A stretch of 64,000 nt of DNA. Origin: Oculina patagonica (Eukaryota). The notes beneath the pieces are model-generated. The model did not search any database, was not told the origin of the DNA, and was given only the letters and a program-made list of their open reading frames with translations. The stretch covers positions 32,922,001 through 32,986,000 of the forward strand of contig NC_135759.1 of the NCBI RefSeq assembly GCF_052425735.1. The letters are read 5' to 3'. This document shows, piece by piece, positions 15,131-59,712 of this stretch; position 1 is the stretch's first letter; each line of letters opens with the position of its first letter. Position numbers and translations under genes: made by a program.

Positions 15131-15161
15131 ATAAGGCTTCTCTACTGTCATAATTGTGATA

Positions 15162-17942: not shown

Positions 17943-18796
17943 ATGCACTCGTCGATTTGGGGCTCAGTTCTCGTCATTCTTCTCTTGCTCCTTGCGGTAC
18001 AGTATGGCAACGGTAAGCAAGTAACACTTCCGTGATTTTTAGCATGACAGAACGTAGTTGTAATTCTCTTGTATTGTTATTTAATTCTTGATAATCTTTC
18101 GGGCCCTTTTCAAAGCCTACACTTTGTGTCGTAGGGACCAGTTCACGAAGATTGTTGTCATTATAACGTTGTTCTTTCATTAGGCAAAACGAACGCTCAA
18201 GAAAAGGACCTCGTGGACTCCGATGGTGAAGAGGTCGAAGAGGAGAGAGAGTCTCAGAGGGTAAAAACGGCACATACAATTAAATTCTTACATAAGCTTA
18301 TATTACACTGAAAAGGTTATCATAATAGGCCCCATTATAATACGGGTAAGAACCGATGTTTGGGTGAAACTTCAGAGGTGAGACTTTAATTAGCGGTGCA
18401 CCTTGAAAAAAATGCCCAATTTTTTTTTTCAAGTATGTCTTTAAAAAATCCGTTTTAATCTTCGACATTTGTATTCATCCTTGTTTATTTTAACATTTTC
18501 TCAATTTGAATGTAGTTTTGCACATCAACAATTTCTTACAATATCGCAGCGTTTGACATCATTACTTTTTAACTTTACAGTCGGAGATCCCTCGACACCA
18601 CCGCAGCCGTGAAGCACACGCCCGTCATAACAGGAGAGCCGAGCGAGGCCGCTACCGATCCGTTTTAGCTGTAGGCGTGGGTTGTGCAGTGGCCGGCGGC
18701 TGGATTTGCTTGGCAACAGTTGTTTATGTGGTGCGCTATCTTCGCGCCAAAAAGAATGCGGGTGCACGTGATTCTTCGTCTGAAAACTTGCTGTGA
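17943..18796 (+). CDS. Gene D: small (120 aa) type-I single-pass membrane protein with no globular ectodomain; not in the ORF track
   Basis: Exons 17943-18012 (MHSSIWGSVLVILLLLLAVQYGN, signal peptide), 18184-18260 (acidic linker) and 18581-18796 (SEIPRHHRSREAHARHNRRAERGRYRSVLAVGVGCAVAGGWICLATVVYVVRYLRAKKNAGARDSSSENLL*). Canonical GT-AG, 363 nt in frame. Upstream TATA-like motif at about 17535 and UTR-exon donor GTAAGT at 17651. Confidence 0.8.
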
Positions 18797-19841
18797 TTGG
18801 TCAATTAAGAGGAAGAACGAAACAATGATTTCAACATTGAATTTGCTGGAAACTTTACAAGATTCATCATATTTTCACGGTGATACCGAGAGTTAAACAA
18901 ACATAAAATGTATACGTTACCTAAGGCCCGCTTTGATTTTTCCACTTTGGCTAAGCGTTTCGGTTATTTCGTAAATGTACTATTTCAATGGGTAATTGAA
19001 GCGAAGATAACATAATTTTCGATAATTGGGATATGAAAGTTTCAACTTGGCTCCGAGGCTTTGGGGAATAAAACAAAGAAATTATTCATTCCACCCTCGA
19101 CCCGTCGATGAGATATATTTTTCTTTATTCCCCGGAGCCTTGAAGACAAGCTAGAATTTTAATATATCGAAATGGGCCTATAATTGAATAAGAGAAACTA
19201 GCATAAAATGTTCCAGTCGTATAATATCTTGTATGTACATATTTACTATTTATAATATTTAGTTCAAAATGATTCCCACGGAAGAGTGATAAGACATTTT
19301 CAGAATTACTGAGAAAGGAAGCATTTTACAAATATGATCAGTCAAGGTTGCATAGATGTTCTGGATTATTTAATACAGAGCTATTTCAGGAAATGTTGTC
19401 GGGAATTGCTTACGCCTCGACGGCACCGAGTGAGTGATAATCTCGGTATTCATAAGATTAATTTTGCATATTGGTGGAAAATAAATCGCCAAGTTCTGCC
19501 CTCAAGAAATCTTTTGTTTTTGAAGTTTTTTTTTTCATTTTCTCGGGAAATTGGGATGTTAGAAAATTCTGCTAAAAGTTTGGCTGAAGGTAGCGTGTTT
19601 AAAACAAAACGGACTCCTTATTTGGTTAATCTCATTAGTGTTTAGCTACCCCTTTCCACCTTTCGGGCTGGTCGTAAAGGCTTTAAAAAGCTTTCATTTA
19701 ACAACCTTTGTTGAAATAGCTGTGTGTAAATGTTACCAGAAGTTCAGGATTATGAACTTTTGATGTTACCGAATATATATTTCTTAACATGGATTATCTC
19801 ATCCTATTATTAATACATCCATATACGGTGTTGGTTTAAAG

Positions 19842-19856
19842 AATAATAATAATAAT

Positions 19857-19915
<59 letters not shown>
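19842..19915. repeat. (TAA)n microsatellite
   Basis: About 24 TAA units with one interruption. It explains the poly-Leu ORF 19856-20044. Confidence 0.95.
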
Positions 19916-19919
19916 GAGT

Positions 19920-20426
19920 CTTGGTTTTAGGCCATCGTAATATAATAAAAATATAACACAAACAGCGGTGATAAACATTATGAAAAATCGCATTTTTATA
20001 AACTTGACGTTTCGTGCTTTAAGGCCCTCACTAAATGTGACCATCCATCAGCTATTGCTGATCACATAAAAACCACAGGCCATAACATCAAATGGGATCA
20101 TTTTGAAATCCTTGCGTCAGGCAAAACTGACCTCCACTGCAAGATTAAAGAGACCTTATACATTCATGAACTACAACCTTCTTTAAATGCCAATGTCGGC
20201 AGTGAGAGGTTGTTACTTTATTAACCTAAATGTAAATATTAAGTTACTGCTGAAGATCAATTGTCTCAGTCTAGGTTCCAGACCCCTTTAATAACAATAT
20301 ATAAATAGTTGCCAAAATTTTAACGGTCTTACTTTTGAAAATGTATGTAGCTTAGCATACGAAACGTCAAGTTTATAAAAATGCGATTTTCATAATGTTT
20401 ATCACCGCTGTTTGTGTTATATTTTT
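19920..20426 (+). mobile_element. 5'-truncated Penelope-like element: GIY-YIG C-terminus plus pseudo-LTR with an inverted partial copy
   Basis: 20018-20224 reads FKALTKCDHPSAIADHIKTTGHNIKWDHFEILASGKTDLHCKIKETLYIHELQPSLNANVGSERLLLY*. A ~70-bp inverted repeat pairs 19946-20015 with 20359-20427. A 12-bp flanking duplication AATAATAAGAGT lies at 19908-19919 and 20427-20438. Confidence 0.88.
20331..20372 (+). ncRNA. Minimal type-I hammerhead-like motif with variant core (UUGAAAA)
   Basis: Stem I ACTT/AAGT, core TTGAAAA in place of CTGANGA, stem II GTATG/CATAC, GAAA, palindromic ACGT stem III, GTC cleavage triplet. It lies in the Penelope pseudo-LTR. Confidence 0.55.
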
Positions 20427-21380: not shown

Positions 21381-23620
21381 GAAATTGTAATCATTTCATT
21401 AAAAAAAAAACAGTACGCCGCACCTCACTCCGATGGGCCAACAACATTGTAAGCTTCTATGAGATATTAGACGAACAATCAAAAACCTTGTATGTTGCTA
21501 GTTTTAATAACAACCTTTTTGTTTTTCTAACAACAGTTTGTTGCTAAACACTTCTTGAATGACAGCATTCATATCTGCATACCCATGTTATCATGGTGTC
21601 ATAAGGATTCGTCACTTGGCAATTACTGTCCAAACTTGCGGGAAGTCTTCGAGAAGGGTATCAGCAACTTAATGCCGGTTTGCAAAGCCAACTGGACAGA
21701 CGAAGGTTTTCAATTTGTGCAACGCGCACGATCTAATATAATCCATGAGTGGATAGCAAAGAGGAATGGGCTTTGGACTTGACAATCGGGGCTCGGAAAT
21801 TCAACGAATGTCGATTTCGCTAGATCATCGTTGACGCATCCGAAGAGTTTCCGAAGGCTGTTGTCCGAGCGAAATAATGTTAACACTATGTTGTGGCAAG
21901 CCCTTGTCACCTCAAAGATACGTCACATCAGTTTAGCAACATCACTGCGAAAACCTCTCGGGCTCAGCGTGAAGTCTGATATAGAGCATTTCAACCGAGT
22001 AGGGTAACTGATCGCCCGGATGAAGCCAGCTACACGCAAGAGACTACTTCTAAACGCCAAGCATGTCTGTTTACAGGAGATTTTTGTGCGATTTACAAGG
22101 TGATATTAATGACACATTTACTGTTGCAATTCATTCTATAGACATTGTTACTGTCATAACATACCAGTCGTCACTGGCAGGTACTATTCTGCCCTCCGTA
22201 CTGCGCACGCTCTAGGTTCAATTTATTAGTAATGGTCTCTAGGGAGGTGAGTGACTTCATCTTTGACTGAAAACTCTTCAAAAATCGCGGATTTTCTCGG
22301 TAAGTAAATAGAGATTTTCATGATTTAGTTCATTGTTATTGATTGTAAAGCAACGCTTGTTAGATCATGCAAAACGTTAACTTAAAACCTCAAAAATATT
22401 GTCAACAACAGTATGGTCCGTGATCGCGCGCACAAGTCGTGTAAGAGTTTGCCAGTCGGCTGAGATCAACACTTTGATTTTTTGTTAGACAAGAGAGTAC
22501 CTATCATAAGTTTCCATTTAGCTTCTCTTTGGAGGAAAAAACCGAAATGGTTAAAGAGAATAAAGATCAAAAATACACAGCAATGTAAACTACGAATATA
22601 ATTTTGACATTGTCAAGTTCAGTTGAGTTGTTATTCTGGTGCCTTATTCACGGTTCGTTGTACAGCTACATGTTTTTTTTTTCAGTTTGTAAACAGTTTT
22701 ACTGCGTTTTTAAAAAACAATTTTAAACTCAGGGAGCTTTGAGTCATTTTAATTTTTAACAACTATTTAAAAGCCTCGCGAAATCTGTAAAATGGAATAA
22801 CATGTGCTTATGTTCCGGAAAATTGATTACAAACATCCAATACAAAACGTAATAACACAATCATCTTAATTGGCCAGTTTAAGGGAGCGTAAAATAAGAA
22901 TTGAGATTAATTACGCTTACATGAATTTCGCTTCATCTGGTGCACACCTCTTATGAGAAGGTCAGTTTATTTCAAAAAAGGCTAAGTTGGTTAAAGCATC
23001 GCAACCTTGGATAAACGGCCGAAAAACCTGTTTGATCTGGGCTGTCTTGTTTAGATAGAGGTTAGGACAACCGAAATAAAAATTGCTTGAAATGATAGTG
23101 TAAATGATTTAGTAAACGGTATACCATGTTTCCAGTTTTACGCCCAAATACAGATCGCGACTTTTGTGAATGTATGCCAAATGATGAGTTGAGATTTTGG
23201 TCACCGAAACTCGGTAAGGCTTGTCTTCTGGGGTTACCTTCAGTTCGTACATATTAGAAGACATCACCTAACGTTCTGTAAGTTATATAAGTTACAGGGT
23301 TAATAATCATCGCACAGAATACGCTGCACAACATTATTCCCTGCGTTTGCAAAACTTGGTGCGCACTCGACTTCTACCTGCAGAGTGTGTATGTGTGGGT
23401 GGGACTGTGGCGAGACCTTCCACCTACCGGGCATGCAGGGGAAGGGAGAGAAAGAGGGACTGTAGGACAGTCTTAGAGCAGAACATGGCTGCATGGTTAT
23501 TATTGAAGTACATTAGAAAAAATATTCATTCTGTTGTAGTTATATGAGTGATAAAAAGGGTTCTGACGCTTTCCTTTTGGCTTCTCTTTTATCTGAATAG
23601 ACGGTGGGGACAACGAAGAC

Positions 23621-26311
23621 ATGGAGACTGGTTTAAATCTGGCTTGTTTATTTTTACTTTCACTATTTAGTATCACAGGTAAGATAAAAAGTAATTTTGT
23701 AAGCAACTGCTAGCCCGATAACAACAGTACTCCGTTTGCTATAGCTTAGCTCATTTGATTTAACTAAAAGTATACATCACCCTTCCCAAACTCAATTGAC
23801 AACTGATATTATACGTTGTGAGTTTATGTGCATACACGTTTGCTATCATTCAGGCCTTCTCAGTCTAGTTTTTCGCAGTTATTCCAGTCTGTCAAGTTAC
23901 ATTATTGCTTCTTTTTTCTCAATTTTACATCAATTTCTACTTGTGAAAGTGATTAATGAAGATATTAATAATAATAATTTAATATTTATAATGCGCAAAT
24001 CATACATGTAAAAAATTATTAAATGCTCAAAACTAATTAAAAAATTCTTAAATTAAAATATTTAACAAAACACAAATATGAAACTAAGGTAAGTAAATAT
24101 CAAGTAAAGTAAATCATCGCAGTGTATTTCCAATTTAAGCAATTGGAATAAAGAAGCCCGAGAGAAAAATCAGGGCTTTAACGGGATTCGAACCCCGTTG
24201 ACCTCCGCGATTCTACTTGTGTTTAAAAGAATAGCTAACATGATTATTCTGCTCCTCTATTAGCCGCAAATCTCGAACTGATCTCGTCTGACAAGACACC
24301 TTGTAAGAAAAGTGCAGTAAACTACAATGTCACACTCAGCAAAGGCGCCAAGGCTGGAAAATATTACAAAATGGCAGGAATTCACAAGATGGACGAATGT
24401 CTAGGACACTGTTGTGGGTCTAAGAGATGTGACGTTGCCTTCATGGTGAATAAAAACTGTTATCTAGTCAAGTGTTTTAATTCAGACTCGTGTGCCATCA
24501 AGCAGTCCGATAATTCCAAGTTTGACACGATGCTTTCTGTGGTGTCTAAATCAAACGCAAAGGAGACAAAAGGTATGCCCGCTCATTTTCTGCATAGCAC
24601 TATTTTATGATTTGTTTTCTCATTTTGCCAAAAGTTATAAAAATATAAATTAACGTTAATGTAAAGAGTGACGTTTCTCCCAAAGAAAGATATACTTTTG
24701 AGAAAAGTACCAAGAAGAATTTTTATTCCTCGTGTAGTATTATTTTCTCACCAACGCCCTTCTTGCGTTTTAACCAGATATGCTTCTGTTTTAACTAAAT
24801 AGCTAACGCCTACCTATTTAGTTGGCAGTTCTCAATTACCGTACTTGTGCATTTATATTATGAAATGGTTATGCCTACGCAGCGTTATTTTCATTTATTT
24901 CTGTCTAGCCTCATAGCCCAGTCAGTCGACTGGTTCAACTAGAATTGTCTTCTCCGAAACTTCTGGATTCCGGTTAAATATTTGCCCTTGTAGTATAACT
25001 TCTTTGCTGGTGTTAAAGCTCGTCGGTTAGCACTCCAAATGATGCTTAATCACTTCTATCGCCGACACCTTGTTTGATTAGCCTCTCGTTTGTTTGATTC
25101 GGTTATCATCATGAAGACATAAACATATTTGCATGATGGTGAAGAAATTATTCTACATGACACGAGCGTCGGACAAAGAAAAAATCTGACTGGTCCCCGA
25201 CGGGAATCGAACCCATGGCCTCCCAGATACCGGTTGGGCGCTCTAACCAACTGAGCTACGTAAGACTCGCTGTGAGCTAGGCCATTTACTAGGTTGATAA
25301 GTGACACGCGTCCTGCATACTGCTAGGATCAGCAATGTCGAAATCATCAAATTTGTAGTAAATAATAAAGCATGGTAGATGGTAGATTTTAAGCTCGGTG
25401 ATAAAAAATCTTTGATCTTTCATCACACAGGAGAAGGAAAAGGGGAACCTGCTATGGAGGAAAACCTTCAGGAGAAGGCTTCTGGAACAGAAACCACAGA
25501 CCCTTTTATTGTTGACAAAGGAGAAGATGACATGACCACAGTGACTGCTTTTGGGGTGAGTTGGAGCTTTTTACTGTGTAGTCACTACGGCAAGACGGTG
25601 AGATGAAGACAGAAACCGCAATCGTCCTTGGGGCCACCTTATGTCGAGGCTAATAAATTTAGGTTTAAACAAAGTTACAGTCCTTTATTAAAGCAAGTCT
25701 AGCCATCCTGGCCAATTTAATTCAGTGGCAACATATTCGTTGGTAGGCGAATTGATAGAATATAAATGTGATTGCAAGATGCTCGTGTGCGTCGAATTCC
25801 TTGCAACTGCAACACGCTCAAGTCACAGAAGGTGAAGAAACAGCTGTGTTCACGCTGGGCATTCTTTATGACTTGGCATAGCACAGTGTCGACCTTTTCT
25901 CACAATTCCAAGCAGTTTAGTATCAGCATTGTATTTATACTCAAAACCTTAGCATATTGTCAAGCCTTGTGAAGAGAATGAACGCATTCTTTAACTTGGG
26001 ATATTTCCTTCATTTACAACCAAATTCTCAGAAATTGGCAAAAGGTATCAAAAATCAAAATGTGACTCTACTATACAGTATGGTTAGAAACTATAGAAAG
26101 CTGTGTACATTGTCAATAGTGTTTTAGACACTTCAAGACTTAAGATGTTTTTGACAATGTTTTGTAGACTGGAAACACAAAACGATCAAAGCGGTCTTCT
26201 GATGTAATCGACATGGTGGTAGCGATCGGCTGCGGAACTGTGGCTGTTGCAGTGGGCGTGGCTGGTGTCATTGTGATGACAAGACGTTTGATTGACAACA
26301 ACAAATCATGA
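23621..26311 (+). CDS. Gene A: type-I membrane protein (211 aa): signal peptide, one MANSC/KIAA0319-N-like Cys-rich domain, acidic linker, TM helix
   Basis: Exons 23621-23678 (METGLNLACLFLLSLFSIT), 24264-24572 (C...NVTLSKGAKAG...CLGHCCGSKRCDVAFMVNKNCYLVKCFNSDSC), 25431-25555 and 26168-26311 (TGNTKRSKRSSDVIDMVVAIGCGTVAVAVGVAGVIVMTRRLIDNNKS*). 636 nt in frame. Probable UTR-exon donor at 22300. Confidence 0.87.
24105..24212 (-). mobile_element. tRNA-related SINE-like repeat fragment
   Basis: B-box GGTTCGAATCCCG on the minus strand with a non-tRNA tail. Confidence 0.55.
25150..25425 (-). mobile_element. tRNA-related SINE-like repeat (same family as 27270-27495)
   Basis: Minus strand GTAGCTCAGTTGGTTAGAGCG...GGGTTCGATTCCCGTCGGGGAC...TTTTTTCTTTGTCC. 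A related copy lies on the plus strand at 27270-27495. Confidence 0.8.
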
Positions 26312-30984: not shown

Positions 30985-33900
30985 ATGATGCGTTTCATTC
31001 AGTTTCTGTTGTGTCTGATGTCACTCAAATCAACGACCAGAGCTCAAGGTGTGCATATTTATAACGTCTTTGCTAAGAAATGCTATTAAATGCGAGAGTC
31101 ATCAACATCTAATCGTCTAATTTCTCTTTACGGTATCAACAGACAGTCGAACCTCTACTTACTGACACTTCTATAATACGGACACCTCCCTATTGCGGAC
31201 AGTCTACTTGGTCCAAAAGAGACCAAAATTCATATTAATTCTACCTCTATAATACGGACACCTCCACAAAACGGGCACTCTTCCCTATCCCTTTTGGTGT
31301 CCTTATTAAAGAGGTTTGACTGTACAGTCGAACTTAATACGAATACACCCCCATTACGGACGGTTTACTTGGTCCAAAAAAGACTAAAAATTCTTACAAT
31401 CTCTACCAACGTAATACGGGCACCACAATAATACGGGCTCTCTTCTCTGCCCTTTGGTTTTTGTATTTAAGTGATTCTACTAAATACTTAAAATGTTAAG
31501 TCATGAGTTTTACCTAGCAGGTAGTTAGCTCGAGAACGTAACCGCGTCGTCCAAGTTAATTGCACACCTCCTAAATTTCGTTCTTGTATATATTTTGTTC
31601 TCTCCAAATGTCAGTAAAAAGACGATCTTAACCGTAGTTTTATTCCAAACATTTCAGTATTCCAAATGTTTCTCATGGACCAGAAAGGGGAAAACGCTCA
31701 AGTCCTGGACACCGTCAAGTTACCCACATGCACTCATTTGGACATAAAACATGACGTCACGTTGCGCGGCGGAATCAAATCCGGGAATTTCACCAAGCTC
31801 GGTTACCTGAGAGACATGCAGACATGCGTGGATGCTTGTTGTCAGGATCAAAAGTGTGACGTGGCTTTTATGCCAGGTCACGTGTGTTATTCAGTAAGCT
31901 GTTTTAGTGAGAAACTTTGCGAAAGTATTCCAGCTGTGCCTTCCACTGCAGCCAATAAGAGTGTGAGGATTTCTCACGTAGTTCGTGGCGGAGGGAAAGG
32001 AGATGACTTGGAGCAGTTTAAGAAAACACAAGGGATGGCAAAATACAGTAAGTTAAATTTTTATATATATACTTCATTGCAATCTAAAGTTCTACGTTGA
32101 AAAAAGTTTTCACTTAACTGATACACCCAAGATGTTGAGTCACTACTAGTAAATTGTATATCGGTAATTCAGGAATACGTTATTTAGTGTACAAAGTAAA
32201 AGAAGGTAAGATGTATTTTTATTTAAAAAAAAATGATGGCATCTTTGGGGACTGATTGACTTAAACACTCTGTACATTTTTCATACTTTGGGCTAGATAT
32301 TTGTTCAGTAGGATCTTTTTCACTAAAAATGGAAAACATAGATACTCTACTAAGAAGACCTCTAATAATATAAAGTAAAGCAATACGGAAAACATTTTCG
32401 TAAAGGTCAGGACACACTATGCGACAAGTCGCAGCGACAGGTCGCTGCGACGAGTCGCTCCGTGTTTACGGCTTACAAACAAGTCGCTGCGACAAGGTGT
32501 TTGTTTGGTGTACAAACAAAGAATTCATGGTTAATTCATATTTTGTCGCAGCGACTTGTCACAGCGATTTGTCGCAGACGTGTACACACGATGCGACAAC
32601 GCTGCTATCGCTTATTTTGTCGCTGCGATGTGTCGCACAAATTCAAACCAGTTTGAATTCTGTCGCAGCGACACAGTTTGTCGCATGTCACACGAGGCGA
32701 CGTGTTGCAGCGACGTGTCGCCTAGTGTGTCCCGACCTTAAAACACTATTACTCGCACCAAGTAAAGAGGAATTTTTTCCCGATTGTTGAAAACATCTGC
32801 ATATAATGAAAGCTAACTTTATTATTTTCTTACAGCTCAGAAAAATTCAGATCAATGCACACCAAGTCGAATTATGACCAATCACACTCTAAGGGGAGGC
32901 AAGACAGCTGGGCAAATTAAAGACCTTGGAATGGTGGAAAGTGTAGAGGACTGCATCGAAAAATGTTGCGGGGAAAAAACATGCGAAGTCGCTTTCCTGG
33001 TAGATGGCAAGTGTCATTCGATCGAGTGTTATGGAGACGAGCTTTGTCAGACTTTTCCTGTGGAAGATGAAACGTTCTCTCCGACGGTTGTTTATATGAA
33101 CAAGAGAAACGGCAAAAGAATGAAGGATAAAAGTAAGGCTGCTAAAACGGTTTCTCATTAACTTCGCAAATTATCTCGGGGATCAATCACATGCTGAGGG
33201 GACTGAATGGGTAAAGTGGGAATTGGATTTGGGCAAATTTTCACTGGGAAAATGAGATTTGGGTCACTGGGACTGGGATAAACAATAGTACTGGGACTGT
33301 AATTTGTAATATCGGAAAGACAATAGGCTGGGGAATGGGACTTGGGCAATATTTGGTCTGGAAAATTGATTTTTCATACCCCCACTTCAGTATCCTCCGT
33401 GCTAGCTGGCCTTACATCCGCCCTATTAATGGAATGATTTTTTCTTTGCTGTCTTACTGTATAGGCACGTGCAGTTCCCCATGTGTGTCGGGAGTTTGTA
33501 CAGCTAAAAACAAGTGTGCGTGTGATAGAGGATTTGAAGGACCGCACTGCAACGATACTGCAACTGCAGGTAGGTTGAGGAGGGAGGTGTGGTGTTTTGA
33601 AAGCTAGAGCTTTGTCCCCTCCCTTCTATATATTAAAGTGGACTTATTAAAGTACCCACTATTTTGAACAAAGAAATTGTATTTGTACATAATCTTCGCT
33701 TTCACTTAAGCTATACAATATTTTCCTTAATTATGTCGATGTAGGCTTGGTCAGTATTGAAATGCCAAACTCTATACATGCATGAAATCTCCTGTTTCCA
33801 GTCAAGGAAAAAGAATAAGACATTGGGTTGAATAAAACCACAACCAAATGTATTGAGTTAAAAATTGTATGTTTTGCCTCCACTACACATCGGGACACAC

Positions 33901-36900
33901 ATCTCAGTTATAAATTGGGTGCGTTGGCCAGCCGAGCCACCGTCCCGTTTATTCAACCTCAACGGATAATACAAGAAATTACAAACTATGAATAACGCTA
34001 GAAAACTTAATGCACAAGAGCCGGACACGAAAACCCCTAAAAACCAGCAAGTGGAGAAAACGGGGAACGTGTGCCCCCGACCAAGGCAGTGGCGCAACCC
34101 TTGGGGTTTTAGGGTATTCTATCTAACATACTGTAAACAAATACTTTTCGAAATATATGATCTTACAGTGATACAATTATAATAGGAGAACTATTTTTTT
34201 TTTTACACAAAACGAAGCGTAAGCCTGCATCCACGGATGACAAAGGAAATAAAAATAAAACCAAACATTGACCAAAACGTGGCGAAGGCTGACCGTAGAT
34301 TGTCTCACCTTCCTAACGGCCAGCTATTACAAACTCAAATCCCACTATACATTGCACACCGCAAACCCGCGCCCAACCCTCTAGTTCGTGCTGGCAAAAC
34401 AGTAATTTATGCTAATCTAAGACTATCACAAATTACATTTTACTTTTAAACGATATTCCAGGTTTCTGTGGATTGTCTGGCTGTGGAGTGTTTGGAGAAT
34501 GCTCGTTCAACGACACATGTGTTTGTGAGCCAGGATACTTTGGCCACCTCTGCAATAGCACGTGTAAGTAGACAATGGTTTCCAAGGAAATGTTCTCGTA
34601 TGCCCAAAGGGCTAGAAAAAGTCTCGAAGTGGACCAATAATCGACAAAGCTGTAGAATATTATTCTTTTAGGAAGCTGTTTTGATCCCAGCTGCGGAGAA
34701 GAAGACAGTGCTATCTTGCTTTGATTTGAATTCGCTTGGTGGAGTGACATTTCATTGTGCCTGAAAGTCGTTACAGACGAGAGGTCATGTATCCGCAAAT
34801 GTTGCAGCGTACAAAAAATGTGCTATAACACGAGGGGAAATGGCAGGCACAACAGAAAATCCATCGGGGACTTGCCGAGGGGACAAATTTTGCAAGGATG
34901 CGATTTCCTCTTGTTTGAATGGTGCATGTTTTTTTCACTGCAATTTGTCCATGCAAGGTGACCCTTCCGGAGAATCGACCTTCATAATCGGCGTAAAAAA
35001 CATTGTTGAAAATATTGGTTTCGAAACGAAGCTAGTACATATACGTTCTCATGCATTACCTCTATGGTACTTCGAGTGCACTTTGGTAATATATTCTAAT
35101 TTTCCCTTCCAGTAACCTGTAACCCGCAATGTGAAAATGGAAGATGCATCGACAATTCCACTAATTCAACAAAATGCTACTGTGAGATAGGATGGGAAGG
35201 ACAGTTTTGTAACAAAACAAATGGAGGTGAGGAAACACATAATGCACTATGAATGGTCCTAAATTGCACGAACCTGGAACCAACTTCAGACAAAAGTAGA
35301 TTTAGCCACTATTTCCGCTTCTACTGCACTTACAAAAACTAGCGCTTTGTCGAATTAAAAGAAAATTAGTCCTCTTAAACATTGTAAAGGATAGGAAGAG
35401 CGAATTGAATCTTATACTGGCTTTCTGACATTTTTTATCAATATCTTGGTATTTTGATTGTTTGTCTTTTTTGGTATTTTTGCACCAGTGTTGAATATTT
35501 GCTGAATACATAACGGCCTAAAATTATGTTATCTACTTTTTAAAGCCGACTTTCTCAAAAATTCTGTCATGAAATGAATAGAGAGGTCGTAAGCAATCCA
35601 TTACATTGATATAAGTAAGGTCATAAGCGTTAGTGTTATAAGCAAGTTCTTGTTTAGTCGGCTATTTTCTATTTACTAAATAAGGCTTTGACAGATGTGC
35701 TTTGTTCATTAGTTAAGTCATAAATGAAATGAACACAACAGTAACATGGTAGTGTGATACATTTTCGTTATCATTCTTAGATCGGAAAATTTATTCACCT
35801 TCAGGAGGGGAAGTGTTATTCACAAAAATGGACCAAGAGGCAGAGATGGATATCAAGGTAATGGAGAACATTCAAATATCCCTTTCTTTTCTTTCCGCCA
35901 ATACAAAAACTTGACACATCCTTTCTTTTATTCCCAAAAAATAAAATTTACTCATCAAATGTGAAGTAAAGACATTAAATCTTACTAAATTTGATTAACT
36001 CTGCCACAAAAAATTTGATTAACTCTGTCACAAAGCAGGACCTCTTTGCAAATGGTGTTATTCTTCTATAAAACCTACTGAATCTTTTACAACTGCCTTC
36101 TCGGGGTGGGGAGCTTTCATGTTAAATGCTCGTCTGTCGTGGTGGAAGCTTTATTTGACCTCTAAATACCATTCTAAAATAGACACACAAATGTACGAAC
36201 CAAAGCGGCTTTAAGGACAACATTTTAACATTCAATATTAGTGCACTGCAAAATAAATAAAAAAAACTAGACACTGAGCTTGCAATATAAATTACAAGTA
36301 TTCGGGTTTTTTAATTTTAGTGATTAGAAAATATTTGTTTTAAAACACATTCAACATGACTGTCAATAAAACAAACCACACGCCACGCGACCTTTCTAGA
36401 ATTAGTTGACACTACAGCTGCCCCCGCTGTTACTCAATTTTCGTTAAAGTTATAATTGGTAGACTTTCTCTTCTAAAGTAGAGGTAAATTAACTATAAAT
36501 TATGTCCTATTTACACTAGATTCATCAAATACCCTCCAAATCAGCTGAGTCCATCTCGGCCCTGGCTGTGGCGATCGGCTGTGGAGTGGCGGCAGCCATT
36601 GTTGGAAGAGGGTCTGAATGGGGGGTTCCACATGTCGGTAGTCGGTTAAAAATTCCTTACTTTGTCGGTTGTCGGTTAAAATTTTCGACCTTTGTCGGTT
36701 GTCGGTAAATCTCAGTTAATAATTAAAAGTGCCAGTTAATTATTAATATTTGTTAGTTAATTTACGCAGTTTTAAGACTTTAAACTCTAGACGAGATGTA
36801 AAATTTGTAATAAAACACTTAAACCTCGTTAACTCTGTTTTTTTTTTTAAGAATGTGTTCGTCTAGTACCGATAATATTACCAAAGCTTTTATTCTAGAT

Positions 36901-44664: not shown

Positions 44665-45786
44665 ATGGATCTGACAAACACATCTACAAGGAATTCCTCT
44701 CTTGAGAACTCGACCACTGATCAGATTGTTTGTCCGGCTATTGGCGATGAAACGACATCAAAAGCCATCCAAACAACTGCATACTGTGTCGTTCTTCTCC
44801 TCTCCTTGGTGGGGAATACTCTGATAATACTAGTCGTATACCAAAACCCTCGCATGTGGACGGCGTCCAACTACCTTATCGTCAACATGGCTGCATCGGA
44901 CCTCCTTCTTCCCTTCTTTGCAGTTCCGAGAATGATCGTGGAAGTCCTGGTCGGTAGAGAGCGATGGTTGATCGGAGGTACAGCCGGTTTGACCCTATGT
45001 AAACTTGCCTATTTCTTCCAAGACGTCTCCACTGCAGTCTCTGTTCAGAGCCTTCTTGCCATAACAGCTGAGAGGTTTTACGTGGTGATGTTCCCATTTA
45101 AAGCAACTGCGATGAAGTCCAAGATCAAGTATGTTATTCCCTTGACCTGGCTCATGGCGGTCGGTCTTCATGCTCCGTATCTTCAAGTCTTCAAGCTGTG
45201 TTTGGTCCATGGAAAACTATATTGTTGCCAGAGGTGGTCTGTGTCCCTTCAAAGCAAAATTATATATTTCTTTTTAATTATCAGTTTAGTGTTTGGCGTG
45301 CCGTTAATTACAATTGTGATTTTGTATGCATTTATTGTTTACAAATTGTTTCGCCAAAAGCTTCCACCCGGTGCCCGCAATTCCATCACTCAGAATCAGC
45401 GAGATCAACGGGAGAGACAAAACCGGAACATCCTTAAAATGGCGGTGACGATCGTTGTGATTTTCTTCCTATGTTTTTCGCCACTAGTAATCCTAGCCCT
45501 GCTTTTAACTACCGGCAGCGTTAGCATAGACAAGTGTAAAGCCGAGATATTTCGCATGGTTGCAAAGTTTTTCGGTCAGTCAAATTGCGCCTTGAATGTT
45601 TTTGTTTATTACGCGTTTAATTCACAATTTAGAAGGGGATTTATTTCTAATTTGAAAAGAATGTTTTTCTGTGGTGGAAGAAATAATAATCGCATAAATA
45701 TAAGCGTGAGATATTCCACTTCAAGCCAAAGAATTTCTCTCTTGTCAGAAAAACGGAATAAACGTGGTTGTACTGCAAAGGAATAG
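44665..45786 (+). CDS. Class A (rhodopsin-like) GPCR, neuropeptide (RFamide/tachykinin)-receptor-like
   Basis: 373-aa single-exon CDS with N-terminal N-glycosylation sequons, GN (TM1), NMAASDLL (TM2), TM3 Cys, ERF, TM4 Trp, CFSP (TM6) and NVFVY (TM7). Confidence 0.93.
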   Translation: MDLTNTSTRNSSLENSTTDQIVCPAIGDETTSKAIQTTAYCVVLLLSLVGNTLIILVVYQNPRMWTASNYLIVNMAASDLLLPFFAVPRMIVEVLVGRERWLIGGTAGLTLCKLAYFFQDVSTAVSVQSLLAITAERFYVVMFPFKATAMKSKIKYVIPLTWLMAVGLHAPYLQVFKLCLVHGKLYCCQRWSVSLQSKIIYFFLIISLVFGVPLITIVILYAFIVYKLFRQKLPPGARNSITQNQRDQRERQNRNILKMAVTIVVIFFLCFSPLVILALLLTTGSVSIDKCKAEIFRMVAKFFGQSNCALNVFVYYAFNSQFRRGFISNLKRMFFCGGRNNNRINISVRYSTSSQRISLLSEKRNKRGCTAKE

Positions 45787-46342
45787 ATATCCATAAAAGA
45801 TTAAAAAGAAAACTTTGTTTTTGAAAAGTTATTTAGTTATTTAAGTAATTCATAAGGTTTTTTGTCAGCTTGGCCTATGTAGGTGGGCCTGAGCAATACA
45901 GCAATCACCACTTTAATCTTATTAGATTAGTCTCAGTCGAAAAGGCAGTTATAGCAATAAAATACTAATGCGTTGAAAAAGTAGTGTTGTAGAAGATTCT
46001 AGTCTGTTTTTCATCGTATGTTGTTTCCCGAGTTAAATCATTAGGAGAGCACTAAATTTTCCCCCGCGTTTTTTGATATGTTTTTGGGCATAATTAAGTA
46101 GCTAAAACATTTTCTTTTTAGGCAGTTATCACTGAATCCACAAGGATATACCACAGTGATCAACATGATGATATTCAATATTAACTCCGTCTGTGGTGAG
46201 ATAATTTATCGATAAGAAAATAGTGAAATTATTTTGTTGTATTTATGTTGTACTATAAATGAAAAACCCTGCTAAAGTAGTTTATACTTCAGTCGATTTT
46301 TTCAAAGCCAGCACTGTCAAGTCGATATTGTACATAAAATAA

Positions 46343-46557: not shown

Positions 46558-46653
46558 TAAATTGTAATATGAATTATATATACTGCAGAAATAACGTCAA
46601 TAAGAGTTTTCATTTTAGTTTAATGTCAGTGTTATATACATGTATTATATTAA

Positions 46654-49145: not shown

Positions 49146-50087
49146 ATGGAATTAAATTTGTCCAACATCACATTTTATTTGAAACAAGACGTCCATGGCT
49201 GCCATCCATACAAATGGTATTATAGCGAAATATCTCCAGGAGTTTTTGAACTTATTTCAGCCATACTTGATTGTTTGATATCCGTTTTTTCAGTCTTTGT
49301 CAACGGGCTTGTAATTTTTACTATACACCAATCTACGAACCTTCATTCGCCGTCAAACTTGCTTATTGCCGGGCTGGCCATGTCGGATTTTGGAACAGGA
49401 CTTATTACGCATCCAAGCCATGTAATCGAATACGTGGCAGCCGTCCGCGGCGACAACTGCACGGCAAATATTGCTTTTATGGTCATTAATATTTCTGGAT
49501 GGTTGTTCACAATACTCTCGCTTACAACGTTGACGTTCATAGCTGTTGAGCGCTACTGTGCGGTGGTATTTCATCTCAGATACAACGAAAAAGTCACCGT
49601 GAGGCGAACTATGATTGTCCTGTTGTCTATATGGTTCACCGTTCCATTAGCTTCCACTCTAATCGCAGTGAAAAAATTGAAGGCTCTCAATTTTCTCTTG
49701 GCGCACGCATTCATTATTCTAATTGGAATCTTCATAACATGTTTGTGTTATTTTAAAGTTTTTCTTGTCCTCCGGCGGCATTATGGACAAATTAGCATCC
49801 AGCTACAAGCTCAATCTCTGCAGCAGCCAGCAAGTAACGCAGCCCACTACAGACGGAAATTCTTCACAGTTCTTTACATTGTAGGAGCATTTGTGGCTTG
49901 TTATTTGCCATACAGCATTGCGGTTTTGGCTCGTTTCGAACAGAGAAATCGTATGACCATGCTCGCAGTTTTAGGTGGTAATTCTTGTCTTAACCCTTTA
50001 ATATATTTCTGGAGGATACGAGAATTACGGGAGGCTGCCAAAAGTCACGTAGCTAAAATAGTCAAATGCTGCAGAAATAATCAATAA
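49146..50087 (+). CDS. Class A GPCR, melanocortin/adenosine-receptor-like
   Basis: First ATG at 49146 (MELNLSNITF; the ORF-track start at 49107 is not ATG). Motifs LHSPSNLLIAGLAMSD, ERY, CYLP and NSCLNPLIYFWR; very short ECL2. Confidence 0.9.
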   Translation: MELNLSNITFYLKQDVHGCHPYKWYYSEISPGVFELISAILDCLISVFSVFVNGLVIFTIHQSTNLHSPSNLLIAGLAMSDFGTGLITHPSHVIEYVAAVRGDNCTANIAFMVINISGWLFTILSLTTLTFIAVERYCAVVFHLRYNEKVTVRRTMIVLLSIWFTVPLASTLIAVKKLKALNFLLAHAFIILIGIFITCLCYFKVFLVLRRHYGQISIQLQAQSLQQPASNAAHYRRKFFTVLYIVGAFVACYLPYSIAVLARFEQRNRMTMLAVLGGNSCLNPLIYFWRIRELREAAKSHVAKIVKCCRNNQ

Positions 50088-53435: not shown

Positions 53436-56400
53436 TCAAGGATCGTCAGGTCTTGGCTCATCATCATCGTCATCATCATCATCATTTCTTTTTCTCATCA
53501 GTTTCTTTGTCACCAGAGCAATGGACGCTGTGCCAACCATTGCGCATGCGATTCCCACGCCAATAGCAACGGCCAGGCCAGAGGACTGCGTCTTATTGTC
53601 CAGCTCGGACTAAAATGAAAAACAAATTTCGTTTATTACATTTTATAAACGCATTGAGACATCCTGTTAAATGAAAAATTTTGAAACCGATTTAAAAAAA
53701 ATACAAAATTAATCTTATCAAAACTTTTAAAACCAAATATTCGGCCGCCTTCTGTTGCCTTTATCAGAGTTTGAAACAGTTAATAAATGTAGAGTTAATA
53801 AGTTGTTTGCATACCATCCTTCAACATCCAACCAACACATGTTGAGAGTTGTTTTTTTTTTAATCATGTCAAAATTGTTACAGTCAACTCTCTCTAAGAC
53901 GGACACCGTCGGGACCGGCCCGAACTGTCCGTCTTAGAGAGGTGTCCGCCTTATAGAGAGTCGAGGTAACCTAACACCAGAAATTTTGAGTTGATAAAGC
54001 TTAACGGCTATGCACAACGGATACACGTCTGTTTTAAGTCGCTTACTTGAGAAAAACCTAAAAAGTGGGACAAAAATAATATCAGAATTCGACTCATTTG
54101 CTCATTACAAACGGTAATACTGTAAGTATAAAACTACCTCCCTGGTGCCCATGCGCAGAGATGTAATACGTTATAAGGGATTGTTTTTGGTAAGTTTGGT
54201 ATTCTAAAGCGCTGACTTACTATGATATATGTCAATACCATGTTTTGGAGTATTATTCACTAAAAAATAACTTTTTGTGCGTGTCCGTTAGCGGTTTCAA
54301 AGTGTCCGTTGTCCGTTTTAGAGAGGTTTCCGTCTTACAAAGAGTTTTGTTACAGTAAAATGACTGAAAAACGGCAGGGACCATCACCAGGTGTCCGTCT
54401 TATGGAGGTGTCCGTAACGAGAGAGTTGACTGTATTCTTAGCAGTTCAATTCCTAAGCGACTTAAGAAGGCAGCTCTTAGATAAGTAAGTAAGTAAGTTG
54501 CCTTTATTTAAAAACACGATTTGGATAAAAGCTTACAGCTTGTGGGGTCGTGTAAATTAAAAGTATTAAAAGTTAAAAATATTTACAATTAATTAGGCTA
54601 TTTATATTTGTATTTGATTTTAAAATTAGTAAAAGTTAAACTTATAAAACTATTTAAATTTGAATTAATTTATAAACCAGGCGACTTAAACCATATTCAG
54701 TCATTGCCTCGATATTGCACCATGAAATAACAGAATAATTACGTACTCAATAAATAAATAATATAAAAAATATATATATATTTTTTAAGAGGATGCTCCC
54801 GTCACATGACGTGGTTTTCAGGGATGTCCTCACATAAAACTAACTACAAGGTTAAAAATCTAGTTTGAAAGGTAAGAATATTAAATTACAAGTATGAGGT
54901 TCTAAAAAATTAAGAATTATGTTATAAAAATTTGTTCAATAAAAAACTAAAAGTATTTTGCTATTAAAATAAAGTACTCACTCCCGTAAAGAGGGTTTTC
55001 TCAACTTCTTGACTTTCTGGAATTGCTACGGTTCCACCTAAATGAAAACAATCCTTAGGAATTAGTCAGTTGCGAATAGATCACCCTGTTAATCTGCAAC
55101 ACAGTAGTATCAGATTTTGTCAGGTCTTCTTCAGTGTTCAAGAACTGGCATGCACGGCGGAAGGACGTTCTACCGCTCAGCTAGAGGAGACTTTGAAGCT
55201 ACGCCACATAACAAGGTTCAAATGTGCCAACCTTCTCCCCACTAGCGCTAGGATTTTTTAGTTGGTATGTTAGATATGCGTAGAAAATAATGATAGCATA
55301 TGTTAGCCTTGGTGGGAAAAATGAGATGAATGTTATTTAGTTAGTGACACAATCGACTTTTGTTGGAAGAGTTCAGAGGAGACAGAAGAGTCTATTCCGA
55401 GATGCCTGTGTCACTGACCTTTCTCAAATAATGTTTTTTATGAAGTAAATTAAATTACCAACTGTGGCTTTCGGTTTAAGGGTATGTTCCTCTACATGCA
55501 AACCTGAAATTAATTGAAGTGTGTGTAACTACATGCATACATGCAAAAAAAGTACTGCCCGGCACGAAAGTTGGAAAAACAAGGGATTAGGAAAACCAAT
55601 CCTTGGTAAGCCTTTTGTCGTCAATCTGGCTTCTCAATGAGAGCATACCTAAAGGACCCCAACAGAAAAACAAAACATCCCTAAACAGAAGGGAATCTTG
55701 ACCCATTAACTTACCCTTAACAGAAGGAAGGTCGTCGATTTGCAAAGTTCTGCATAAGCATAGCTTATATGGCTGCAAAATGCCTTTTGTTGACAATTCG
55801 TTTAATAATAAACAATTATCCTGCGCAATTTTGCAAGTTGTGGTCCGATTTATCTTGTAAAAGAACAGCTTTCTATTTTGTTGAAGTAATAGCCTCACTT
55901 AGCCACGGCCTCGTCGGCTAAGTATCAGGCGATTATCCACGTGATTTTGCAGGATAGTTGTCAAATATAAGTTCAGTAATTGCATTACAGAAAAAAAAAA
56001 AAAAAAAAATCTGATCCTGGAAATTGTCTTTCTTACCCGGCGTATAATAGCAATACGTCAATTTCATCTGAGCTCCATTCTTGTCCATCTGGAAAGGATT
56101 TTCACCTTCCATGTTTATCTGATATCTTCCAGCGTTTTTATCAAAGTTAACTGCTTCTTCTTTCAGTGTTGCACCTTTGACTTGTTGGCATCCACCGCCG
56201 CTCAGAGAGTACAAGTAAAAAGGTTTGTCGACAGGCAGCGAGATAGCATTGGTGATTTCACCTGCGAGTTAGGCAATGAAATGTACAATTACAAGACGTT
56301 AACGAGGGGTGGTAGCAACATATAACATAACATAACATAACATAAAACTTTATTTATCCTCGAATTTAATATAGCTAAGACAAGCTAGTTTCTTCGAGAA

Positions 56401-59400
56401 ACAAGTGAAATATATATTAAAAAATAAAGATAAAATAAGTAAAATAGAAATAACAATATTATTATATCCGTTAACTACTTACACATTAAAACTATATAAA
56501 AATACAAATTTACAAAAGTTTGTTCTATTCACCCCCTCCCCAATGATAAAAAGTCTTAGCTAAAAGTACATTGTCGGATTAACTAGCAAAAGTTAGTTCC
56601 ACACTAAGTGGCTCGATTTTTACTTTAGGAGTGAAAGAATTAGTGGAAATAGGAGTAAATATATAATACCATCACAGTGTCCCTGCAGATATTTTAATAA
56701 GTATGGCCTGTAACTTGCTATAAACTTGTTTTATTATCTTGCAACAGAAATAAAAACACCAAAAGTGGTGAAAGCAAAGAAAGATCAACTAAAGAGGAAA
56801 AACTAATGATTAAAAAATTAAAAATTTCACCACAATGGCAATTTTGATTTTCTGGCATCCTGCCACAAAATCAAATTGATAAACTATAATCCACTTCCAT
56901 CCTTGTAATTCTGTACTTCTTCCCCAAAAGACTTGTTCTTTAGAATTTTTATCAAATTTATTTGTATATTTGGTGGTATTTGGCAATATAACTTAGAAAT
57001 TAGGAAAGAGAACTTTCGCTTATTAGCCAGGACACTGTCCCTTTAATTTGTTTCTTTAATACTGTAATGGGACATTTTGTGCGTGATACATAGTGTAAGG
57101 ATCGGACCAAAAGCACGTTAGAGGGAGAACGATTTGATTTCGGTGCGTTCGGTGCTACGCGATTAAAACAGTTAAAACGACTTCAGGAACTGTCTATACC
57201 TTCCTGTGTGACGTTATTACAATACTTTCCTTCGACCGTTATACAACAGGTCAGGTATACAATAAGCAACTTAGCCACTTACCTCTAGCACTACAACAGT
57301 AGTTAATTGCTGTGTCTTTTAACTTCTTTCCATTAACAGTTTTGTCTTGGAAATGAGAACTTTTTGGGTGCCAGCGAACCGACCTGGGTGTTCAAACAAC
57401 ATGACAACCACCAAGGTAGAAATTAAATATATAGAGGACTGTTTCGACTGCCATAAGTGCTTTGAGGGTACACGCACAAATCAAATTGAAGTCTTGGAGT
57501 TAAGGACATTTACGGGCAAACTATTTGAATGCATGGAAAAAGGAAAAGTGCTGAACACGAATTGAACACGAATTGTCTAAACCATGTCGTGGTTTTAGAC
57601 CATCGACGACCTTTGTAAACTACCATAAAAATAAAGCATACTTTTGAAAACTGGCAAAGTATAGATTTAAAAAAGTGATTTGCGGGTGGATGGGTAGATA
57701 GGGACATTTGGCATTGGAAATTTCCAATGACTTAAAAAAGTCAAAGAATCATTTTAGGTTTATTTTCGATCAAGAGTTAACACATTTATAATGAAATATA
57801 TGAAAGGAAATTATTTACCCGGCAACGAGTCCAGCTGGACAAGCTTCGTGTTTCAAAATACAATATCTTCCTTGTGGCCATTCTTGGGACTTATCTTTGC
57901 TTGTCTTGATACAAAAGTCCTGTTCAATACCTAATCACATATTAAGTTAAAAAAAAAAAATTTTATTCTCTAACTGCAGGCAGTAGTCATAGTATAGACT
58001 CCCTTAAATGAAAGAAATTAAACGGACATACCTTCTTTGCTAACCCAGCCAGCCAAGTGAAGAGAGTCGTACACTTTGCGGTCGATAAGATTGCTGTTGG
58101 TATCATCATGAAATCTTCGACCGTCAAACCAGTTATTCGGACAGCCGACTTTGGGCATTGGGAGGCCATAATTACCAGTTGGCCATTTGAGATTTCCTGT
58201 AAACAATAAATAAATTTTGGTAGATAGTAGAAACATTCTTCTCAGTCAGGAGCGATAAGAACTTTTTTAAGCAACAGGAAAGAAGGTCCAGTCAAAAAAA
58301 AACTAAAACATTAACACGATTAGAACCCACGACCGTAGCCAGGGCGACGCACGTTCTGCCAAGTTGAACTCGGTTACTTTGGAACCAGGAACTCATCCGT
58401 GATAGTCTGTCCGTTTCCGTTTATATGGGGAGGCTATTTAAACGGTTGTACAAAACAATTCAAGAAAATGACTGGGTGATCTTTTGTTCAAAATAACCTT
58501 TGAACAACAAGAGAAGGCTTGAAATCAGTCTCCAAGATGTAACTGATGGTTTTTAAGAAATTTTCTTCCAAGTGAAGCTGTCAAACTTGAAAACGACGGT
58601 CCGACGTTTTCACGTTTCACGTTCCTACCAGTCAGTGTCAATCCACGTTTTAGCAATTTTCAGGATTTGTAAAGTACGTTTTGGCGAGGACAGGCCACTA
58701 TCATTGGATTTACAATTCATAATAACACCTTCATGGGATTTTCAAATTGCACTAAATCTCGATGATACTGCCCCTTTTTAAGTCGGGGTTCCACTGCCAG
58801 GAGTCCTTTATTGGAGCATAGCTCTTATACAGTAATGTTTACCTTGAGAGGTAAATTACTTGCAATTACTGTATCTTAAGACATTCAAGTTTGCTTAGCC
58901 CAAATATCGCGACATTCCTTCAGTAACACATCAATCCATCAATTGTCATCCGTTCTAGGGCCAATGATGATTTTTGTTTATGAATCATTGCAAGGTGTTT
59001 TAACAAAATGTTAGATAAATATAGCTCAGCGGATTTTATCAAGCGTTAACTGGGCTCCTGCCATAAGTGAATAATGGTAATTTTTTAAAGTTATCCGGCA
59101 TATAAAATGTTTTAGTGATTGTCTTCTGGAACCGTTCAAATACAATATCATCTCGGTTATCTCAAATCTCGCTTTTTCAAACTCCCGCTTTCTCGAACAA
59201 GTTATCGTTTCCTTTTTGTGATGAAGAAAGTGGGATGATGGTGTATCGCGTTTAGTTCATTAGGGGCTGACTGAATGCGCAAACAAAATGCACAGTCAGG
59301 GCCATAACCAGATCTTTGGCATAAACGAGGCAAGATCTTGCTATGAGGTTCTGGGAGCATGCCCTCCAGAAAATTTGGAAATCTAGGAGCTCTGAAACTC

Positions 59401-59712
59401 TTTCTTGAACATTTTTTATGAGGCATTTCTTGAAAAAAATTATTCTTGTTCAACTGGGGATTATTTTCCCAACTAAACATATTTTGTTTTTAATTTTAGG
59501 TTAAGAATCTAGACGAGGCAAGTGCCTCGTCTTGCCTTTTGCTAGTTACGGCCCTAACAGTGTAAAATGAGGCTGAACTATTACAATGGAAGACACAGAC
59601 ATTATACAATCGACGGTCTACTAATGGATTTAATTAGTTTACCTTTCGTCGAATGGCACCAGAAAACCACCAGCGAAAAAGTCACCGATAACCAAAATAT
59701 CACTGGACCCAT
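53436..59712 (-). CDS. Gene C: membrane-anchored apextrin C-terminal (ApeC) domain protein (300 aa): signal peptide, ApeC, linker, TM helix, poly-Asp tail
   Basis: Minus-strand exons 59712-59643 (MGPVIFWLSVTFSLVVFWCHSTK), 58196-58032 (WPTGNYGLPMPKVGCP), 57930-57819 (FCIK...WPQGRYCILKHEACPAG), 57383-57283 (NYCC), 56261-56037 (ISLPVDKPFYL...CQQVKG...LTYCYY), 55037-54982 and 53609-53436 (GLAVAIGVGIACAMVGTASIALVTKKLMRKRNDDDDDDDEPRPDDP*). 903 nt in frame, eight ApeC cysteines. Confidence 0.9.
53881..54432. mobile_element. pogo/Tigger-like MITE
   Basis: TA|CAGTCAACTCTCTC ... GAGAGAGTTGACTG|TA with subterminal GTGTCCGT repeats. Confidence 0.85.
54480..54900 (-). mobile_element. Stacked LINE 3'-end remnants
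   Basis: (TAAG)n tail plus TTTATT (poly-A signal on the minus strand) and a hairpin. A second tail starts at about 54780. Similar solo tails lie at about 1695, 48405 and 56320. Confidence 0.45.
57401..57622 (+). repeat. ~220-bp direct repeat, copy 1
   Basis: Near-identical to 60965-61211. Confidence 0.9.
59297..59556. mobile_element. MITE with CAGGGCC termini
   Basis: CAGGGCCATAACCAG / CTAGTTACGGCCCTA, flanked by an ACAGT duplication. Confidence 0.6.

Follow-up and report, generated by a model that had tools for sequence, protein, structure and literature searches.

Gene organization of the cluster

Four genes for type-I single-pass membrane proteins, which we call D, A and B (+ strand) and C (- strand), lie within a stretch of 64,000 nucleotides (nt) of Oculina patagonica DNA (NCBI RefSeq assembly GCF_052425735.1, contig NC_135759.1, positions 32,922,001 to 32,986,000 of the forward strand). 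This whole stretch is hereafter the window, and its positions are counted from its first letter; its GC content is 36.6% and it has no runs of N. We consider, with moderate confidence, that the four genes are paralogues of one old cnidarian family, in which a homologous 3' module encoding the transmembrane helix would be combined with ectodomains diversified by exon cassettes, and in which the helix would be preserved because it packs specifically within the membrane. The gene models were reconstructed from splice sites and reading frames, and the signal peptides and type-I topology are predictions read by eye from the spliced translations. The family features, with protein lengths in amino acid residues (aa), are as follows.

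17943 to 18796, + strand: gene D, 120 aa, three exons, no ectodomain cassette
17943 to 18012, + strand: D, signal-peptide exon, 70 nt, ending in phase 1
18184 to 18260, + strand: D, acidic linker exon, 77 nt, phase 1 to phase 0
18581 to 18796, + strand: D, terminal exon with basic juxtamembrane stretch, helix (18662 to 18742), tail ending in ENLL, and stop
22238 to 22297, + strand: A, probable non-coding first exon, from the alignment of the RNA-derived contig L014
23621 to 26311, + strand: gene A, 211 aa, four coding exons
23621 to 23678, + strand: A, signal-peptide exon, 58 nt, ending in phase 1
24264 to 24572, + strand: A, MANSC cassette exon, phase 1 at both borders
25431 to 25555, + strand: A, linker exon, 125 nt, phase 1 to phase 0
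26168 to 26311, + strand: A, terminal exon with RSKR site, helix (26210 to 26290), short tail and stop
30985 to 36607, + strand: gene B, the part before an insertion, eight exons
30985 to 31048, + strand: B, signal-peptide exon, 64 nt, ending in phase 1
31658 to 32047, + strand: B, first MANSC exon
32836 to 33132, + strand: B, second MANSC exon
33465 to 33569, 34462 to 34563 and 35113 to 35226, + strand: B, three EGF exons
35781 to 35857, + strand: B, linker exon, 77 nt, phase 1 to phase 0
36520 to 36607, + strand: B, first part of the terminal exon, carrying helix residues 1-16
37501 to 37592, + strand: B, rest of the terminal exon (second helix half, YELL-containing tail and stop)
53436 to 59712, - strand: gene C, about 300 aa, seven exons
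59712 to 59643, - strand: C, signal-peptide exon, 70 nt, ending in phase 1
58196 to 58032, 57930 to 57819, 57383 to 57283 and 56261 to 56037, - strand: C, four ApeC exons, outer borders in phase 1
55037 to 54982, - strand: C, linker exon, 56 nt, phase 1 to phase 0
53609 to 53436, - strand: C, terminal exon with helix (53579 to 53499), poly-Asp tail and stop

A preliminary description of this DNA had ascribed one layout to the four genes, namely a signal-peptide exon ending in phase 1, a cassette bounded by phase-1 introns, a linker exon that starts in phase 1 and ends in phase 0 and a terminal exon with the transmembrane helix, and the splice sites confirm it. The terminal exons of D, A, B and C all begin in phase 0, and phase 1 is found at every border of a cassette in A, B and C, the phase pattern of exon shuffling, in which a cassette can be gained or lost without a shift of the reading frame; the introns internal to the ApeC cassette of C are in phase 2 and phase 1, and D splices its phase-1 signal-peptide exon straight to the linker. 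The linker of 77 nt attributed to both B and D was recovered in each, with an alternative in-frame acceptor in B that would yield 53 nt. A probable non-coding first exon had also been proposed, and for gene A the contig L014, from a related coral, points to a likely one: its first 65 nt align at 22238 to 22297 (80% identity, expectation value (E) 4e-7), about 1.3 kilobases (kb) upstream of the exon with the start codon. The helix peptides quoted at that stage for D, A and C are exact translations of the window at the helix coordinates listed above, and the one quoted for B is interrupted in it.

Annotated orthologues and RNA-derived contigs support these exon models, and in them the terminal exons do splice to the ectodomains. 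Orbicella faveolata LOC110040941 (211 aa) has an architecture identical to that of A, with 92% identity over the matched region, and L014 and a second contig of the related coral (L013), both of about 2 kb, hold the whole A reading frame and align to the window in blocks ending at the rebuilt A exon borders. The terminal exon of D, used as a query, is 97% identical to O. patagonica LOC144640927, and D is not overlooked by annotation, being recorded at 114-123 aa in Oculina, Orbicella, Desmophyllum, Porites, Acropora and Nematostella. Orthologues of B of 443 aa adjoin A in Orbicella, where the protein ends at the stop codon of an uninterrupted terminal exon, and in Acropora, and one of 455 aa is present in Nematostella. 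As for C, the source assembly calls a gene with its exact end coordinates and an ApeC match; that call has 315 aa and our model about 300 aa, the rebuilt linker exon matching the sequences P0051 and P0060 (Acropora cervicornis KAK2563740), in both of which the junction between linker and terminal exon recurs. An Acropora ApeC paralogue has uninterrupted coding sequence on many transcript-sized contigs. The only labels that we found in the databases are "uncharacterized protein", "MANSC domain-containing protein" and "Apextrin C-terminal domain-containing protein", so that domain-based annotation does split the genes, as had been anticipated.

In the Orbicella locus L001 (from contig MZGG01000774.1), the first two A coding exons and their surroundings are doubled (L001 3957-5103 and 10001-11147). 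The copies lie 6,044 base pairs (bp) apart and have identical matches; either the assembly has doubled the segment or a partial duplication took place very recently.

Ectodomain cassettes

Domain assignments were made against the Pfam gathering cut-offs (27 bits for PF23597, 25.5 bits for PF07502 and 26.5 bits for PF16977). The A ectodomain matches KIAA0319_N (PF23597, 47.4 bits) and MANEC (PF07502, 27.9 bits), both above cut-off, and B matches MANSC/KIAA0319_N twice (38.9 bits in the first of its exons and 46.9 bits in the second), followed by EGF-type Pfam matches in three exons. Both proteins combine an N-terminal signal peptide with one C-terminal helix followed by basic residues, a type-I arrangement. 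In C, the exon pieces match ApeC (PF16977) with 35.0, 41.1, 14.5 and 56.3 bits and together account for most of positions 1-208 of the profile, leaving 97-115 uncovered. The ectodomains had been described as unrelated, which does not hold for all of them, as A and B have MANSC in common.

Cysteines conserved at eight positions, together with three DXED motifs, are typical features of ApeC (PMC8361754). All eight cysteines are present in the ApeC part of the spliced C model, and the DXED motifs are degenerate in three of three cases, the sites reading HDDT, WHPKSS and FDKN. At the corresponding sites, a fifth group, which we call C' (Acropora millepora LOC114964484 and its relatives, membrane-anchored ApeC proteins), retains acidic residues (DTED, WDDE and DDDD). 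ApeC proteins with mutated motifs are known, and the domain occurs in many architectures (PMC8361754). The loss of the DXED motifs therefore weakens a claim of canonical ApeC function for C, and does not affect its membership of the domain family.

A transposon in the helix codons of gene B

The interruption of the B helix peptide is due to one further element.

36608 to 37494, no strand assigned: non-autonomous DNA transposon, 887 bp, inside the helix codons of gene B

Its ends are perfect inverted repeats of 16 nt, which occur at these two places only within the window, and the target duplication TTGGAA is found on both sides (36602-36607 and 37495-37500). The element carries subterminal TGTCGGTWGTCGGT repeats, and no transposase-sized open frame was seen in its 887 bp. 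The helix peptide is split by it, residues 1-16 ending at 36606 and the rest restarting at 37500, and, as assembled, the B frame continues past the half-helix into the transposon, where it meets a stop after 33 codons.

In Orbicella, the B terminal exon is uninterrupted (L001 21326-21502) and the insertion site is empty; aligned to the window, this exon shows an overlap of 5 nt exactly at the insertion site, and the exon remainder at 37501-37592 is 97% identical to it. The terminal inverted repeats, the target duplication and the empty orthologous site together identify the element as a DNA transposon insertion. The B peptide as originally quoted is a conceptual join, that is, a reading of the gene before the insertion, and it equals the intact Orbicella exon except for one residue.

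The source assembly extends its B call to 570 aa (to about 41662, through 39146-41662). We rejected this extension, as no convincing coding sequence was found between 37600 and 41700; the gene prediction was probably misled by the interruption of the terminal exon.

Distribution and conserved gene order

Genes of the A type are present in Nematostella (A7SXW4), in the jellyfish Rhopilema and in the hydroid Hydractinia, and a further medusozoan A-type gene model carries a EukProt label only, which we read as an Aurelia genome annotation. D is represented in Nematostella by LOC116609823, and the C type is found in Nematostella (A7RXW2) and Acropora cervicornis. The C' helix is intermediate between those of B and C, and the C' tail joins the Y-x-L-L of B to the P-x-P-D-x-P ending of C. 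No bilaterian match was obtained, either in a profile search of 1.84 billion representative proteins (described below) or in a targeted search with the helix region of Nematostella A, which returned cnidarians only.

Gene order was compared across corals and an anemone. In Nematostella, D, A and B fit into about 12 kb and are arranged and oriented as in the window, and its D and A genes have the same exon plan as those of the window. In Porites the order is PSMD13-D-A, as in the window, where PSMD13 (about 5171-15201, + strand) precedes D, A and B; in Orbicella, A and B are adjacent, and the contig that carries them has D some 30 kb upstream of A. Since the D-A-B order is shared with Nematostella, the cluster predates the coral-anemone split. 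By these sequence comparisons the family is old, neither coral-specific nor recent, and in the case of A it reaches Medusozoa.

PSMD13, a proteasome subunit with a PCI domain, also lies upstream of D in Orbicella, where a minus-strand M1AP-like gene is located beyond it; the latter aligns at 5171-5246 of the window.

Similarity among the transmembrane helices

The helix and its short flanks in A, B, C and D, together with three orthologues, were built into a profile of 41 columns, which was searched against the 1.84 billion representative proteins. It returned 38 matches at E ≤ 0.001, 17 of them at E ≤ 1e-10, all of the A, B, C or D type and, wherever the source is named, all cnidarian; no unrelated membrane protein was retrieved at E ≤ 0.001 from this library. 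In a six-frame translation of 209,000 residues, a background that includes the 14 helices of two G-protein-coupled receptors (GPCRs), the family exons score at least 36 bits and the other frames at most 10 bits. No Pfam family was found at E ≤ 10 on the four terminal exons or on the C-terminal 92 residues of Orbicella A, apart from two chance-level matches to domains of unknown function (DUF). A search of the ESM Atlas with Oculina D gave generic small membrane proteins (glycophorin, TMEM154, syndecan and podoplanin) at lead-level scores, and was not used.

That the transmembrane helix joins the genes into a family, as first proposed from their terminal exons, is supported by profiles compared across groups, for A and D less firmly than for B and C. 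B and C match each other with 53-61 bits (E 1e-9 to 1e-12 at the scale of the library), and against B and C the scores are 21-29 bits for A and 23-30 bits for D, corresponding to E values of about 1e-6 to 1e-4 for a proteome of 30,000 proteins. With profiles built without the group in question, B obtains 32-57 and C 37-50 bits, significant at library scale, and A 11-28 and D 7-25 bits, significant at proteome scale only and for some members only. Composition-preserving shuffles with free register gave p < 1/3000 for B against each of A, C and D, and 3e-4 for A against C. The local probabilities of hhalign are 96% for A-B, 96% for A-C, 99% for B-C, 95% for B-D and 94% for C-D. When a profile is made of B and C together, its next matches are the A and coral D exons (23-31 bits), separated by at least 14 bits from the noise (at most 9 bits).

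From these comparisons, we regard the helix relationship of B and C (and C') as secure. That of A and B is very likely, because these two genes also share MANSC domains and are adjacent, and that of D with B and C is likely; A and D are linked through B and C only.

Several of our results speak against the descent of all four helices from one ancestor. Direct similarity between A and D is absent (1-5 bits, hhalign 28%), the shuffle tests are weak for D-A (0.05) and D-C (0.013), the scores of A and D against B and C are not significant at the scale of 1.84e9 sequences (E 0.03-9), and Nematostella D obtains only about 9 bits with the profile of B and C. In addition, the statistics of HMMER and HH-suite are less reliable for hydrophobic segments, and the nulls used here are shuffles and a six-frame translation that includes GPCR helices. 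These observations would fit an alternative in which only B, C and C' are homologous, the likeness of A and D reflecting convergence of Gly/Ala/Val-rich helices and the position of D beside A being incidental; neither A nor D resembles B or C in its tail or linker, which agrees with it as well. Nevertheless, we find convergence quite unlikely, since A has independent ties to B in its homologous MANSC domain and its place in tandem, the A and D exons are the sole sequences that rise above the noise for B and C profiles (by the margin given above), the exon phases are identical in the four genes, with a 77-nt linker in both D and B, the order D-A-B has persisted from before corals and anemones diverged, and hhalign gives 94-96% for A and D against B and C.

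Constraint on the helix and its possible meaning

In A, C and D, the three genes in which this was measured, no segment is better conserved than the 27-residue helix, as would be expected if the helix has a specific function. Compared with Nematostella, A retains 85% identity in the helix and 49% in MANSC, and compared with Hydractinia, 81% and 37%, respectively. For D and its Nematostella counterpart, identity is 70% in the helix and 18-52% in the other segments, and for C and Acropora C' it is 70% in the helix and 39% in ApeC. Within stony corals, the ratio of nonsynonymous to synonymous substitution rates (dN/dS) of the helix is 0.01-0.03 for A and D, with 53-67% of synonymous sites differing, so selection acts on the protein. 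Between paralogues, the same codon is used at only about one third of the identical residues; the similarity is at protein level only, which rules out recent gene conversion as the source of the paralogue likeness. By these measures, the similarity of the helices between paralogues is old and maintained.

In the outer half of the helix, a common pattern can be recognized across the groups (L-A/V-V-A/G-I/V-G-C-G/A-V). Seven columns (13, 15, 17, 20, 24, 26 and 27) hold small residues in all four groups, and five of these are spaced i, i+4, i+7, i+11 and i+14.

The gene models, the relatedness of the module (strong between B and C, moderate between these two and A or D), the age and synteny of the cluster and the selection on the helix are established by these data, and from them we infer both the common descent of the four helices and packing as the reason for their constraint. 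The fixed 3' module would consist of the phase-0 terminal exon that encodes the helix, preceded by the short linker exon that passes from phase 1 to phase 0, and the ectodomains would have diverged as phase-1 exon cassettes were gained, lost or exchanged, leaving none in D, one MANSC in A, two MANSC and three EGF in B, and ApeC in C. The helix is under much stronger purifying selection than the ectodomains, and it would pack in a sequence-specific manner within the membrane, among members of the family or against a shared partner. We favour packing because the helix is so strongly constrained and so rich in small residues, and because the proteins have no cytoplasmic domain able to signal alone. 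Two observations tell against it: a helical-moment test of the seven small columns showed no clustering on one face beyond that of shuffles (p=0.21), for which reason we claim no single interaction face, and the tail of A has only about 9 residues, so that any signalling by A would need a partner.

The non-significant test for a single face would also fit a helix that had no specific partner and were subject only to general constraints of insertion and trafficking, the genes being ordinary tandem paralogues with independent functions. The other tails carry motifs of a generic sorting type (YELL in B, LL at the C-terminus of D and a stretch of acidic residues in C), which is consistent with this explanation. 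We judge it very unlikely, given that anchoring rarely keeps a helix at 70-85% identity while a folded ectodomain drops to 37-49%, and rarely gives a dN/dS of 0.01-0.03 with near-saturated synonymous sites.

Basic sites close to the membrane suggest another possible source of constraint, proteolytic processing. In A, an R-X-K/R-R motif is found within the 40 residues before the helix in the examined corals, Nematostella and Hydractinia; in the window it reads RSKR (26183-26194), 6 residues before the quoted helix. In D, three or four RXXR motifs are present in the juxtamembrane stretch (18593-18661 in the window), which is 85-100% conserved within stony corals. A convertase might thus cut the basic site in A and D, after which a rhomboid or gamma-secretase type enzyme might cleave the stub, or the outer helix half, rich in Gly, Ala and Cys, of every member, releasing ectodomains such as that of the EGF-bearing B, in the manner of Spitz-type ligands. 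Such a signal would account for the basic sites of A and D and for the conserved outer half-helix, where cross-paralogue conservation is concentrated and small, helix-weakening residues abound, and the type-I topology with short tails is compatible with it. However, B and C, which have no basic site near the membrane, fit it less well, the motif match is one of pattern only, and conservation in A and D spans the whole helix, beyond any cleavage zone; we therefore consider processing an unlikely explanation.

A bolder version of the packing reading would make these proteins docking subunits. In this version, the helix would dock onto a multi-pass or signalling protein common to all, or onto other members of the family, so that interchangeable MANSC, EGF and ApeC heads would be mounted on one transducing core, D would act as a regulator or competitor, and co-regulation would have preserved the D-A-B cluster over a span exceeding half a billion years. 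We hold this version doubtful; if true, it would describe a cnidarian receptor system organized by a transmembrane code and not by cytoplasmic domains. The broader suggestion made at the outset, that the proteins may assemble through the membrane into combinatorial complexes, is plausible. The accompanying suggestion of a role in immunity or symbiosis is weak, because the ApeC of the window has lost all three DXED motifs.

Relation to known membrane protein families

Syndecans are type-I proteoglycans defined by their conserved transmembrane and cytoplasmic region. By analogy, the proteins described here seem to resemble them in that the signature lies in the helix and not in the ectodomain, and in being small type-I proteins with short tails and a helix rich in small residues. 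They differ from syndecans in that their terminal exons have no Pfam Syndecan match, no C1/C2 blocks and no EFYA ending, and in that their ectodomains are folded MANSC, EGF or ApeC cassettes, whereas those of syndecans are glycosaminoglycan-bearing stalks.

With the MANSC type-I proteins (KIAA0319/KIAA0319L, MANSC1, LRP11 and HAI-1), A and B share the N-terminal MANSC/KIAA0319_N, the signal peptide and the single C-terminal helix; unlike them, A and B lack PKD, LDLa and Kunitz domains, and their helix module has no Pfam family and, in the profile search and the targeted search described above, matched cnidarian proteins only. C resembles the ApeC-containing proteins, apextrin-like proteins of pattern recognition, in its full ApeC with the eight conserved cysteines, and differs from them in being anchored to the membrane by the family helix and in its three degenerate DXED motifs. 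The amphioxus and mollusc ApeC proteins that have been studied bind peptidoglycan (PMC8361754, PMC9585378). D, a type-I protein of 120 aa with no folded ectodomain, in which the helix and the juxtamembrane stretch are conserved, may be compared by analogy to the FXYD, KCNE and RAMP subunits, although no sequence relationship between these and D was detected.

Our literature search found no paper on these genes or on a cnidarian transmembrane family with MANSC or ApeC domains, and no Pfam family covers the module, in line with the initial impression that the family had not been described. The family of the helix module thus seems undescribed, although tandem paralogues, exon shuffling and families defined by their helix, such as the syndecans, have precedents.

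Annotation based on domains takes no account of single-pass helices, which tend to be regarded as passive anchors. In this family, nothing but the helix ties together proteins filed apart as MANSC, ApeC or uncharacterized, and the constraint on it spans the coral-anemone split in A, C and D and extends to hydroids in A. The genes offer a concrete family in which to ask how membrane helices carry specificity in early-branching animals, with Nematostella as a tractable system, and a clear-cut case in which phase-1 exons were shuffled while the 3' module stayed fixed. They also draw attention to uncharacterized, conserved proteins of the coral surface, among them one with a lectin-type ApeC domain.

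Other features of the window

Two genes outside the family are located between B and C:

44665 to 46135, + strand: rhodopsin-type GPCR gene, 373-aa call, 7tm_1
49146 to 50087, + strand: second rhodopsin-type GPCR gene, single exon, Pfam 7tm_1 (93 bits)

The open frame of the second receptor gene (49146-50084) has an exact match on chromosome CM126636.1 of assembly GCA_052425735.1, and the protein matches are to stony corals. The intergenic region between D and A contains a long AAT/ATT trinucleotide run (19839-19937), which translates as poly-Asn or poly-Ile. A repeated element is present in two copies with near-identical open frames (57322-57480 and 60886-61044, - strand) and with flanks at 57513-57731 and 60990-61208, one copy falling within a C intron, the other upstream of this gene.

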